From assembly GCA_033442325.1 (NCBI GenBank), contig JAWQFM010000003.1, forward strand, positions 2,535,970-2,599,969: a stretch of DNA of 64,000 nucleotides. The letters run 5' to 3'. Below are positions 45,777 through 50,654 of the stretch, in pieces (position 1 is the first letter of the stretch; each line of letters opens with the position of its first letter). Source of the stretch: Salpingoeca rosetta (taxonomy: Eukaryota; Protista; Choanoflagellata). The position numbers and the translations under genes were made by a program. Below the pieces are notes generated by a model. The model saw nothing but the letters and a program-made list of their open reading frames with translations, did no database searches and was not told the origin of the DNA.

Positions 45777-46362
45777 GAGGAAGTGGTGGAAATTGAGGCC
45801 CTCTGGGCAAACAAAAAAAAGCAAGCAAACGCAACTGTAGCAGGAAGATCAGGCTCCAACACGTCTGAGAGCGAAGGAAGAAAGAAAAGGGTCATGTCAA
45901 AACACGAACAAACAAACAAGGGTGTGATGTAAGAGATCACACGCCCCCACTACAGCACTAGAGCACTACCACAACGCAACACAACATCCAGCGGTGGGGA
46001 GAAAACGACCGGTCTATGTTTGTGATTGGCTGCGTCACAACACACAACAAACAAACGGCAAACTCCTCAGCGAGATGCACTCCATAACTGCACAATGGCA
46101 CAGCTCTATGAGCCAGCACAACATTACTGCAACAAGTTCACAAATACAGTTCGCGTAACGGAGCGGTGACACATGACAACGGCACACCGCACACGTGTGC
46201 GTACGAATGCAGTGCCACTAGCCAAAGGCAAAGTGCTGTGGTGTGAGGTGACGTGACAACAGCAAGGACTTATCAGGAGCAGATAATAAACCACCTGTGG
46301 TTGCTTGCTTGCATGCAGGCAATGCAGGCAATGCCCGTGCAGCTGCTGAGCAATGCTCACGC

Positions 46363-49300
46363 TCACGACTGCGCTTCTGCGGTGGCGCTCAGCTTGGCGC
46401 GCTTTGAGTTCTGCTGTTCTTCGGCAGCGCCGTCTCCATCGACGACCGCCGCTCCAACGTGGTTGGCACCGCGCTCGCTGTCCTTGGTGCTGTCCTTGGT
46501 ACTGTCTTTGGTGCTGTCCTTGGATTGGGTTGGGCGGCGTGCTGCTGCTGAGGGCTTTGCTGGTTGCTGAGAAGCACGTGCACGCGTCGCATCCGCGTCC
46601 GCGCCATTGCCATTGGTAGGCTGGGCGCTGCTAGCACCACGCTTGGCCATGTCAGCAGCAACGCCAGCACCGCCGTACGCGTCCCCCACAGCCTTTTGCT
46701 CGAGTGCACCGGCATCCAACGACTCGTCGCCTTCCTCGCCGTCTTCTTCCTCGTCGTCATGCTCATTGTCCGTGCTGATGTTGCCACCATCATCGTCGTC
46801 ATCACCGTCATGGCTGCTGTCGCCGCCGCCGCTCTGGTTTGCCGTCGCGCCGCGCTTTGCACTTGAAGCCGTCCTGGCATTCTTCGCAGCGAGCTCCTGT
46901 AGACGAACGCGTCGCTTCTCAAGCACTGATGAACACACACACACACACAAAGGCGGTGGGGGCGAAGTAGGGTGCGGTAAGTTGTGAGTGGTGAGTGGTT
47001 AAGGCTTTAAGGGTATGTGTGGTGGTTGCGGCGACAATGATTGATGGAGAGCCGACAAGAAAAAAAAACTGCAGGCTTAAGCGTGGTGTTGTTGGCGCTC
47101 AATGGCAGTTGCACGTGCAGTCCTTCTTCTCAGGCACAGAGAGACTCACGGCTTTCAACGACGGACACGTCATAATCCATGACAGCAAGTGTTCGACACT
47201 GCGTGCACTTGACGTCTGTGATTGGGGAGGGGAATCAGGAAGGGAGGGAATGATGGGCAGCCAGGTTTGGTGAGTCGAAAAATAACCGACACGCGACACA
47301 ACGGTGCCCCTGCACAACGGAACACGCACGCACAAACGCACAGACATAGATACACAGACACGTACAGACAGGCAGACAGACAGACATACACAAAACACAG
47401 ACAAAAAGCTGAAAGCTTACATGATGGCACCATGTGGTGGAAGTGTTCACGAGTGCATGCGTGGTTTCGTGGACAGCCGCGCGCGAGCTTTAGCAACTCT
47501 GCAACGTCAGGCAGGCGTGGCCAATGCACAAGAAGGAAGAGAAGGAAATCAACAAGGTAAGAACTGAGGAGCATGGTTGTTGCGGGCTGTGGCTGACGAC
47601 GACTCTATCAGGCCAGCGTTGGGGCGCACGACTCAAGTTGCATGCAAATCCACGAGACTACTGACTTTGTTTGAACTCCTTGGGGGTCATGGTGTGCTTG
47701 CCGAGAGTGCGATACACCTTTGCAATGTCGTTGTACACGCCGCTGGAAAAAACACGCCGAGGACATAAGTGTTAGAAACAGCACCCAGTTGAGAGCCAAC
47801 CAAATTACGGCACCGTGTGAGCACTTTGCAGAACGTATCGTTCACAGTACAGGCCGTGTGGTCCAAGCATGCACGTGCATCTGTCACACAGGTCACGACG
47901 TATCATCACATCATTGCACAAAATCTACTTCTAAAACGACGCAACGCAGCTCGCAACACACACCACTCAAGCATTGACAACCACACTTGCACAACGCGCA
48001 ATCACACACACACACACACACACACACAACTTTGCGCATATTTGCAGAGTGACTACACGTCAGCATATAGGACCACCATCACTCTTTTACATACCCGTAG
48101 CATGTGGAACAGAGCCTGTTCAAGAATGTGGTCAAGGTCAACAACCGGACAACCCACCCCGGGAGAAGAGCGCTGACGTGAGTAAATGTTGTGGAATTGT
48201 TGGTTCCCAAGAAACACGATTGCAAGGAGAACACAATCAACCCCAAGCAGCACCAAGCACAAACACGAACCCATACACAGTGCGCGAAACAAGAGAACAC
48301 TGTTTATTCGCGGGAGAGCAGGACCTACTTTGATGAGGTGTGCCTGCCTGGGCCTTGGCAGATTGGACACGTTGGCCGGGGCTTGCGGCCGCGTCGTCTG
48401 GTGGGTGGCACGGCACGGTAGCCAGACTGTGCGTCCATGGCAGGTGCAGACATGGGCGTGAAGCCTCCGCCAACGGACAGCTGTGACGGCATGACGGCGG
48501 CAGACACGGGGCTTTGTTGGTATGGCATGGTGGAGGGCATAGCGCCCGTTGGAAAAGCACCTGTAGAGAACGCGTGCAATGCGGCTGGTTGGTGCTGCGA
48601 AGCAAACATCCACGGCTGCATGCTCGCGGCTGGGTTGGCGGCCATGAACCAAGGGTTGCTGGTTGGCTGCTGCTGCTGTGGTTGTTGTTGCTGTTGCTGC
48701 TGCGTTGGGTCACGGCCATCCTGTGCGGTCTGCTGTCGCAGCGGCGGCATACTGTGCTGCTGAAACATCATTTGTGGTGGAAGCATCTGGGCTACCGATG
48801 ATCCAGGATACGCCCTCGCTTGCTGCTGTTGCTGTCGTGCTTGCTCAGATTGCCCAGGCTCCTGCAGTTGCGCATTCTGTTGCTGCTGCTGCTGCTGCTG
48901 GAGCTGGTTCATTGCCATCTGCAACTGCATGGCATAGAGCTGCTGTTGCTGCCAGGCGGCCAGCTGTTGAGGGTCGAATCCAGAGCCACCCATGGCTGCA
49001 GGGGTGACTCTGGCCTGTGGCTCCATGCTTGAAGGCGCACCCTGATCTGGCACCAGGGGACCGGCAGGCGGCTGTGCGCGCTGCTGCTGCTGCTGCTGCA
49101 GTAATTGCTGCACCGGCGCGGACTGGAGTTGCACGGCCCGCTTCTGCACGCCTTTGGTGTTGTTGTTGTTGTTGTTGCTGCTGCTGCTTGCGTTTGCGTT
49201 TGCGTTTGCGTTGCTGCCGCCGCTGCGCTGGGTTGGTGGCCCTGCCTCGGTGTCAGCAACAGAACGGGGCATGGCAATTGCGTTCTTATCGCCCATGAAG

Positions 49301-49387
49301 CTGTCCGGACCGAAGGACAGCAAGTGAGGGAGAAGGCGGACAGGGGGGGGGGGGGAGGCTGGAAGTTAGGCGCACGGTGCTGCTGCC

Positions 49388-49418
<31 letters not shown>

Positions 49419-50654
49419 TTGTTGTTGAAGGAAATGCTTGCCTGCAAGCAAGCAAAGTGATAAACGGAAGCAAAACAACGATAGGCGAAGACATGCAATG
49501 GCGGGTATGAGTTCAAGACTTCCACCAAACAATTCGACACACAGACAGACAAGACAGACACACACAGACAGACACGCATATTTCATACACTCAGGATGGT
49601 TCGAACGGAAAGCGCGGCACTCACTCAGAAGCTTTGGTGTAGTGCTCGGTTGGGCTTTTGGGCGGTGGTGGCACACCTACCGTATGCAAATGGCAGTGGA
49701 ACCTGGCTCGACACTGGAGCAAATGAGTGCAGATGACCGACAAAGTGCAAGCAGGAGATGGGGGTGAGGGCGATGCGTGAAAGATGCTGAGGATGCTTGA
49801 AAAAGGATGTTGCTGAATTCGATGGAATGGAATCAAGACGAAAAGGGGCAAAGCAAGCCCGGTATGATGATTGGTGTGGATATAGCAAGCAAGCGAGCGA
49901 ACGCTGGATGCGATTAACAGTAGCACAAGAATTAGCAAGGAAACAAAAGGTAGAGGGAGAAGAAAAGACGAAGATGAGACAAAGGGAGGGAGAGGAAGAC
50001 AGAGAGAGGGGAAAAAGAAACGGAGAAGGAAAGAGGGCCTGGAAGTACAACAACAAGGAGACAAGGAAAAAAAAAAGCAGGAAGGAATCGCGGTGTGCGC
50101 GCAGCTTGCACGCAAGCAAGCAAGACAAACGCTCAGGGATATGGGGCTCTCAGTAGTGAGCTTGCGCTTTGCACCCCGCAAACAAAACACAGGCAAAAAG
50201 GCAGCAAACAGGAGAACATGCAAGCTTACGGTGAGTGATGTGACAACAGGCTGCTGACTGAACGAACAGCTGTGCCCACTGCTGCAATTGCGTTGCCTGC
50301 AGGCACGAACAGAAATGAGAGGGAGCGGGAGAAAGAGAAACAGGCAACGAAAATGAACAATGGTGGGTTGGGGATATGGGTTTCGTGGTCGCCAGAAAGG
50401 GAAGACGAGTGTCGAAACACATAAGTTGACAGTCCGTTGAGCAGATACAAGAGCGGCATGGAGCAGGATCGAGGATCGAAGAAGAAGAAGGAGGAGGAAG
50501 CAGCACAAGCAGCAGCTGGGTGATGCCAGGGAAACGGCGATGTTCCTGGTGGTGACTGGGTTTGAGGTGTTTGAGTGCACTTACCGTTGCTGTGCGCAAC
50601 AGGGAGTGTAGTAGGATTGACAAGCGCTTTGCTTCTTGCGAGTTGCACCTTCAT
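46363..50654 (-). CDS. Gln/Pro-rich putative transcription factor with a double C4 zinc finger of nuclear-receptor-DBD-like spacing (9 exons)
   Basis: Exons 50654-50585, 49676-49625, 49441-49376, 49300-48329, 48115-48095, 47742-47666, 47498-47421, 47215-47150 and 46925-46363 all join in frame with GT-AG ends. Core: RRRGRKPRPT-CPIC-QGPGRHTSSKL-CSTC-x35-CPRNHAC-x14-CTQCR. The three 5' exons are less certain; an alternative ATG is at 49296. Confidence 0.7.

Follow-up and report, generated by a model that had tools for sequence, protein, structure and literature searches.

The origin of nuclear receptors (NRs) is an open question, and their ligand-binding domain is, to our knowledge, specific to animals. 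Whether their DNA-binding domain (DBD) has a relative outside the animals is the question raised by a locus in the choanoflagellate Salpingoeca rosetta. The locus lies on the minus strand of a 64,000-nucleotide (nt) stretch (assembly GCA_033442325.1, contig JAWQFM010000003.1, forward-strand positions 2,535,970 to 2,599,969), which is here called the window and whose first letter is position 1. A first-pass annotation, made from the letters alone, had read in it two spliced four-cysteine zinc fingers, and proposed that the domain is a pre-metazoan relative of the NR DBD or else resembles it by convergence, and that it may represent a transcription factor family not described before. The explanation favored here, at a probability of roughly 0.6, is that the gene encodes a transcription-factor-like protein, belonging to a choanoflagellate family, with an NR-DBD-like zinc domain that binds DNA.

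The domain is absent from every single open reading frame (ORF) in the six-frame ORF list of the window, as had been remarked, and is found only in the spliced product. When joined, the coding sequence (CDS) of 1773 nt yields 590 amino acids (aa) with no internal stop, and every intron is of the GT..AG type. The exon coordinates, phases and splice sites of the first-pass annotation were thereby reproduced, as were its peptide, with spacers of 11, 35 and 14 residues, and its description of the flanks (Table 1). Public RNA runs of S. rosetta were mapped to positions 45900-50100. All five joints (46924/47150, 47215/47421, 47498/47666, 47742/48095 and 48114/48328) are present in a 2270-nt transcript contig of depth 158 (X4 record 1) and again in contigs of a separate study (X7, including record 6), whereas the joint 47742/48095 is also crossed by three raw RNA-seq reads of X21. 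Every piece skipped in RNA is bounded by CT..AC on the plus strand, corresponding to GT..AG in a minus-strand gene. As the joints lie on both sides of the 21-nt micro-exon, which corresponds to the 20-21 letters separating 47742/48095 from 48114/48328, this exon is included in transcripts. No exon-skipping joint was found among the best-supported joints listed; skipping of the micro-exon would preserve the frame, with the loss of Cys3 and Cys4, and a minor skipped isoform is possible. The 3' untranslated region reaches at least 45900.

Table 1. The window gene and its parts, with their positions in the window and the evidence for each.
Feature	Positions	Strand	Evidence
Whole coding region, 6 CDS exons, 590 aa	46363..49296	-	Spliced ORF; transcript contigs X4 record 1, X7 record 6
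CDS exon 1: Gln/Pro/Met-rich N-terminal region (aa 1-299), basic arm, first Cys pair	48329..49296	-	Spliced ORF; donor 48328 joined to 48114/5 in RNA
Basic arm RRRGRKPRPT, aa 300-309	48399-48370	-	In CDS exon 1
First Cys pair, C310/C313	48369-48358	-	In CDS exon 1
21-nt micro-exon: (K)LCSTCYG, second Cys pair C325/C328 and start of helix 1	48095..48115	-	Joints 47742/48095 and 48114/48328 in X4, X7, X21; paralogue micro-exon
CDS exon 3: helix 1 continued (GVYNDIAKVY), then the beginning of the long linker between the fingers	47666..47742	-	Spliced ORF; RNA; helix 27-40 of the paralogue model
CDS exon 4: end of linker helix and third Cys pair C364-x5-C370 (47475-47455)	47421..47498	-	Spliced ORF; RNA; family alignment
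CDS exon 5: fourth Cys pair C385-x2-C388 with an Arg directly after it (47207-47193); a helix starts here	47150..47215	-	Spliced ORF; RNA; alignment; paralogue model
CDS exon 6: C-terminal helix of the domain (LLEKRRVRLQ, to aa 413), Asp/Glu-rich tail, KRAK at aa 578-581	46363..46925	-	Spliced ORF

Several further observations concern the 5' part of the gene. At 49551, in the 5' leader, most RNA reads and contigs lack one base relative to the assembly, either an assembly indel or a polymorphism. X4 record 4 and X7 record 9 join 49713-49624 to about 49438, which suggests a 5'-leader intron (49441-49623) upstream of the ATG at 49296; ahead of this ATG, an in-frame stop (TAA, 49368-49366) closes the frame. 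CAG/CAA repeats at 48666-48703 and 49078-49100 draw reads from many other loci, to a depth of up to about 2900, and give rise to numerous spurious joints as well as a G>T call at 48680, none of which is evidence on this gene.

The pattern of exons and cysteines is not an accident of this one locus. A second locus emerged when the S. rosetta assembly (55.4 Mb, 68 contigs) was searched in six frames with the 25-aa peptide of exon 4; its six-exon model matches the window gene in the positions and phases of the introns. Exon 1 of this locus retrieved the hypothetical S. rosetta protein PTSG_00329 (714 aa), whose annotated sequence contains the spliced model exactly. The two domains are 62% identical, and the micro-exon of PTSG_00329 encodes the same K-L-C-S-T-C-Y-G with at least six differences, all of them synonymous, which at the level of sequence indicates purifying selection. 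A paralogue with the same six-exon structure and the same micro-exon peptide argues that the pattern did not arise by chance. A protein database search with exon 1 of the window gene gave no match, for which a length filter is a possible cause, and no annotated database protein for the window gene was recovered.

PTSG_00329 is in turn one member of a family. A phmmer search with its residues 497-610 against 1.84 billion representative proteins returned 17 proteins (expectation value (E) of 0.001 or less), and all those with a named source are from choanoflagellates, of six named species; neither animal proteins nor NRs are among the matches. S. rosetta itself contributes the query and PTSG_02264, PTSG_12352, PTSG_05628 and PTSG_07689, S. 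infusionum and S. kvevrii three members each, and Choanoeca perplexa, Microstomoeca roanoka and Hartaetosiga balthica one each, with three members unlabelled (two from Logan contigs and one from a marine metatranscriptome). A profile search with the alignment finds about 16 family loci in the genome of S. rosetta, which differ in where their introns lie. When the family hidden Markov model (HMM) was built without the window gene, the spliced window protein still scored 112 bits over aa 304-413, the extent of its domain. Judged by its sequences, the family is multigene, confined to choanoflagellates within this search, and expanded in S. rosetta. With its lack of any Pfam match (below), this bears out, as far as computation reaches, the earlier suggestion of an undescribed family.

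The eight cysteines are conserved in these proteins. Across 16 homologues, C11, C26, C29, C64 and C70 (family alignment positions) are invariant, and at least 90% of members also carry C14, C85 and C88, which are missing only from truncated gene models, so that the first-pass expectation of conservation in homologues is borne out. Other conserved positions are R19, Y30, G32, D36, K39, R87, R89 and P98, although Pro at position 98, otherwise invariant, is missing from the window protein. The consensus reads C-P-V-C-G-G-x-G-R-x6-C-x2-C-Y-S-G-x-Y-N-D-I-x-K, then a variable stretch, then L-P-R-G-C-x5-C-x(11-15)-K-C-T-R-C-R-S-L. The His residues that follow the Cx5C in the window protein are not conserved in the family, whereas the eight Cys are, which points to a ligand set of two Cys4 sites. 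A CCCH reading of the stretch G-C-P-x-N-x-x-C-x-x-x-H-F-H, matched to ZAP at E = 1, was dropped for the same reason. The domains are basic, with a net charge of +6 to +17 and an isoelectric point of 8.9-10.1 in 16 of the 17 examined.

Two kinds of genomic family copy deserve mention in their own right. The whole domain is intronless at C13:1454033-1454365 and C25:530521-530883, where it lies within open frames of 757 and 1334 aa; these two members would be handy for cloning and folding. At C30:460362-460484 and C30:485102-485224, about 25 kb apart, there are identical domain fragments with one in-frame TAA each, possibly a duplicated pseudogene or intron read-through.

What fold this domain adopts was addressed with AlphaFold2 models of the domains of two family members, which serve as stand-ins for the window protein. 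Model 1, the PTSG_00329 domain predicted from a 16-sequence alignment, has a predicted local distance difference test score (pLDDT) of 95.0 and a predicted template-modelling score (pTM) of 0.86; model 2, a Microstomoeca member that is 28% identical, has a pLDDT of 91.6 and a pTM of 0.84, and all five models in each run fall within 2 pLDDT units. In model 1 the helices span residues 27-40, 50-58, 86-96 and 98-113, and two of them, 27-40 and 86-96, begin right where the second Cys pair of the respective site lies, as in NR DBDs. In the predicted structures, two zinc-nucleated loop-helix modules pack into one globular domain.

The comparison with known folds that the first-pass annotation had called for leads in both cases to NR DBDs as the nearest structures in the PDB. 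In a Foldseek search with model 1, ranks 1-30 are all NR DBDs (RXR, USP/EcR, ERR, TR4, COUP-TF, ER and GR), with probabilities of up to 0.93 and template-modelling (TM) scores by target of 0.63-0.69. VIA-align, which is independent of Foldseek and covered 48,161 PDB representatives, gives ranks 1-11 to NR DBDs with either model (Z 7.2-6.0), superposing on 69-77 NR residues at a root-mean-square deviation (rmsd) of mostly 2.2-3.4 Å. ERRγ gives Z 7.2 and 7.1 for models 1 and 2, at rmsd 2.4 and 2.3 Å over 74 and 73 of 76 residues. For model 1, where identity to ERRγ is 20%, RXRα (Z 7.0), TR4 (6.9), HNF4α (6.7) and GR (6.6) also score highly, and FF domains come next at Z 6.0 or below; for model 2 the NR DBDs span Z 7.1-6.0 and the next unrelated fold reaches Z 4.7. 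Sequence identity is 13-20% in the NR rows vs. 0-15% in the others. The N-terminal alignment ranges presumably set the first Cys of the model on what we take to be C421 of GR and C135 of RXR. A shape search of the ESM Atlas puts two zf-C4 clusters first, with TM scores of 0.56 and 0.53 and all others at 0.44 or below; its feature search gave only matches below 0.8, and the Atlas's own model of whole PTSG_00329 is poor (pLDDT 0.39). LIM, PHD, RING, FYVE and MYND structures are absent from the matches listed by Foldseek and VIA-align for both models, and all of these except RING had been named beforehand as the finger classes that would count against an NR-like domain. That NR DBDs alone head the lists, with near-full coverage of the NR domain and, for model 2, a gap to the next fold, and that two models and three methods agree, gives the case its weight, and it is quite probable, going by these models, that the domain adopts an NR-DBD-like fold.

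A number of results weigh against this explanation. The zf-C4 HMM (PF00105), whose use on the spliced domain the first-pass annotation had recommended, does not match the window domain (E of 10 or less), PTSG_00329 or any of the 16 aligned members (E of 1 or less), and PDB sequence and profile searches found no NR. An hhalign comparison of the family with the RXRα DBD (the sequence used is identical to 1by4_A) gives a probability of 0.45%, with only the second finger aligned. In place of the CEGCKGFFRR box, helix 1 of the family carries C-[GS]-x-C-Y-[SNG]-G-[LVI]-[YFW]-[NH]-D-[IV]-x-K. The box that forms the recognition helix of NRs is thus replaced, including by an invariant Asp, and reading of bases in the NR style is not implied; the non-basic, invariant Y-x-G-x-Y-N-D of this helix, unlike the NR P-box, weakens the case for DNA binding. 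On the structural side, the models are those of a paralogue and of another member rather than of the window protein, the Foldseek E-values for model 1 are 0.4-3, and the Foldseek result for model 2 is weak (probability 0.54, rmsd 8), with 1rxr still first. A Z of about 7 is, by the tool's own warning, within the range often reached by unmatched models, and AlphaFold2, which had NR DBD structures in its training set, may favor that fold for a pattern of eight cysteines. The proposal of a relative or analogue of the NR DBD thus stands at the level of the predicted fold and finds no signal in sequence, be it by Pfam, PDB profiles or hhalign.

Nor does any other Pfam family claim the domain, as neither the window domain nor the paralogue nor any of the 16 members has a match above threshold. 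The sole recurrent match is the double zinc ribbon DZR_2 (PF18912), known from the N-terminus of ComF/GntX, which shares a first module of the form C-P-x-C-G ... C-x2-C and appears below threshold in 10 of the 16 members (best E 0.0034). ComF-like clusters also occur in the ESM Atlas structure lists at TM 0.36-0.42. However, the DZR_2 scores (16.6, 15.9 and 16.1 bits) fall short of the 27-bit cut-off, they cover the first finger only, and in structure NR DBDs match far better. Weak matches in single members were to zf-C3HC4_3 (E 0.63) and ZZ_ADA2 (E 0.052). In six frames of the S. rosetta genome there is no convincing PF00105 locus; the lone zf-C4 hit above cut-off, at C31:210311-210472 (+) (24.1 bits, E 0.0026), was judged to be chance because Cys pairs are missing and the stretch is not coding-like. 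Its translation includes an 'F-L-R-R-S' stretch, and it lies beside the start of a minus-strand gene.

How the protein might work follows the arrangement of its parts. It appears to be built like a transcription factor, running from a long Gln-rich N-terminus of low complexity through a short basic arm and a 110-aa zinc domain to an acidic tail with KRAK. Zinc would be held at two predicted Cys4 sites, C310/C313/C325/C328 and C364/C370/C385/C388, each a knuckle and a loop from whose second Cys pair a helix would begin, as in the NR DBD, from which the domain is predicted to differ by one extra helix in the inter-finger linker and by a C-terminal helix. The domain may bind DNA in the manner of an NR DBD, with additional contacts from the basic arm and from a basic patch around K-C-T-R-C-R; the Gln-rich region may serve in transcriptional activation, and the protein would presumably function in the nucleus. 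Binding to DNA, which is suggested by the fold, the charge and the basic arm, is rated somewhat better than an even bet. The arm itself, RRRGRKPRP immediately before the first Cys, resembles an AT-hook in being basic and containing Gly and Pro, and a true R-G-R-P core is present in one member from S. kvevrii, but the window protein lacks a contiguous core of this kind, has no Pfam AT-hook match, and in most family members the arm is only loosely basic. In S. rosetta the basic arm is found in a subfamily of three genes.

If the fold is as predicted, does it reflect common ancestry with NRs? The likeness to the NR DBD (ERRγ 8ifo, RXRα 1rxr/3dzu, GR 7prv) extends to eight Cys in two Cys4 sites, a helix starting from each site's second Cys pair, a loop of five residues from Cys5 to Cys6, an Arg directly after Cys8, and top structural matches in three libraries. 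The canonical spacing C-x2-C-x13-C-x2-C-x15-17-C-x5-C-x9-C-x2-C is, in contrast, not that of the window protein (2/11/2/35/5/14/2). Across the family, the first loop has 11-12 residues vs. 13 in NRs, the linker 34-50 and an extra helix vs. 15-17, the Cys5-Cys6 loop 4-5 vs. 5, and the second finger 5-15, mostly 11-15, vs. 9, so that only x2, x2, x5 and x2 agree. As noted in the first-pass annotation, the FFRR motif, the ninth Cys and the ligand-binding domain are all absent: Hormone_recep (PF00104) was not found, full-length PTSG_00329 is without any Pfam domain, and the C-terminus of the window protein is low-complexity and acidic. A ligand-binding domain is found nowhere in the family proteins, whose hosts are choanoflagellates and not animals. 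On balance, homology between the domain and the NR DBD is a tentative proposition, somewhat short of even odds. It is slightly more tentative still that the family is a surviving stand-alone homologue of the NR DBD, which diverged past detection by HMMs and expanded independently as a choanoflagellate transcription factor family, while on the animal stem the same module was fused to a ligand-binding domain.

The strongest competitor to this ancestry is convergence, by which two tandem Cys4 knuckle-helix modules of a treble-clef-like kind arose in choanoflagellates and pack like an NR DBD without zf-C4 ancestry. The lack of significant sequence or profile similarity, the differing spacings, the extra linker helix in both models, the missing P-box and FFRR motif and the middling Z-scores all fit with it; the nearest structural matches are, however, exclusively NR DBDs and cover nearly the whole NR domain, the family sits in the sister group of animals, and the five-residue Cys5-Cys6 loop and the C-x2-C-R ending are common to both. 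Convergence is regarded as rather unlikely. Less probable again, with a chance of perhaps one in five, is a zinc-stabilised helical module whose partner is protein or RNA and not DNA, in which case the protein would not be a sequence-specific transcription factor. The would-be recognition helix is rich in Tyr, Gly, Asn and Asp and not in Lys or Arg, and FF domains, three-helix bundles of protein interaction, follow the NR DBDs for model 1 at Z 6.0-4.2. For model 2 the FF matches reach only Z 4.4, however, the domains are strongly basic, an AT-hook-like arm abuts the first Cys in several members, and the flanks are Gln-rich and acidic. That the NR-like fold is an artefact of prediction, the real topology being, for example, cross-braced (RING/PHD) or that of two independent zinc ribbons, is improbable, for although the alignments held only 15-16 sequences, AlphaFold2 does not model zinc and sub-threshold DZR_2 matches recur, pLDDT values of 95 and 92 were obtained for two such dissimilar members, the models within each run agree closely, and RING, PHD and LIM structures appear in none of the search lists.

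The notion that the NR DBD is an animal innovation, to which the first-pass annotation had appealed, had already been questioned in its purely animal part. Lopez-Escardo et al. 2019 (PMC6792448) reported a lone Pfam zf-C4 in choanoflagellate proteins that they left unnamed, and concluded that the DBD may be older than the animals, a conclusion restated in a 2022 paper (PMC8942334). Their proteins, as described there, resemble the present family in coming from the same clade and in suggesting an NR-type DBD without a ligand-binding domain, and thus share the same idea of a pre-animal DBD. They differ in passing the Pfam scan, which the family members and the window domain do not. No species or protein identifiers for these hits are given in the text of PMC6792448. 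No paper was found that mentions the PTSG identifiers or combines choanoflagellates, nuclear receptors and Foldseek, and NRs are not mentioned in Richter et al. 2018. As the family fails the Pfam test, is unnamed in the literature found, and S. rosetta has no convincing PF00105 locus, it is probably distinct from the zf-C4 set of Lopez-Escardo et al. and undescribed.

The sole earlier hint of a pre-animal DBD was a choanoflagellate Pfam hit left unspecified in the text of PMC6792448. A concrete, expressed, multi-copy family is now defined in the sister group of animals, with the predicted fold of an NR DBD and detected by no domain model. The family is a candidate for the pre-animal source of the NR DBD and provides an outgroup for structural phylogenetics of the zf-C4 fold. 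S. rosetta is amenable to transfection and genome editing, so that DNA binding, localisation and knock-out phenotypes are directly testable. Even if the likeness is convergent, these proteins would still form a lineage-specific family of likely transcription factors that has been overlooked by Pfam-based catalogues of transcription factors.

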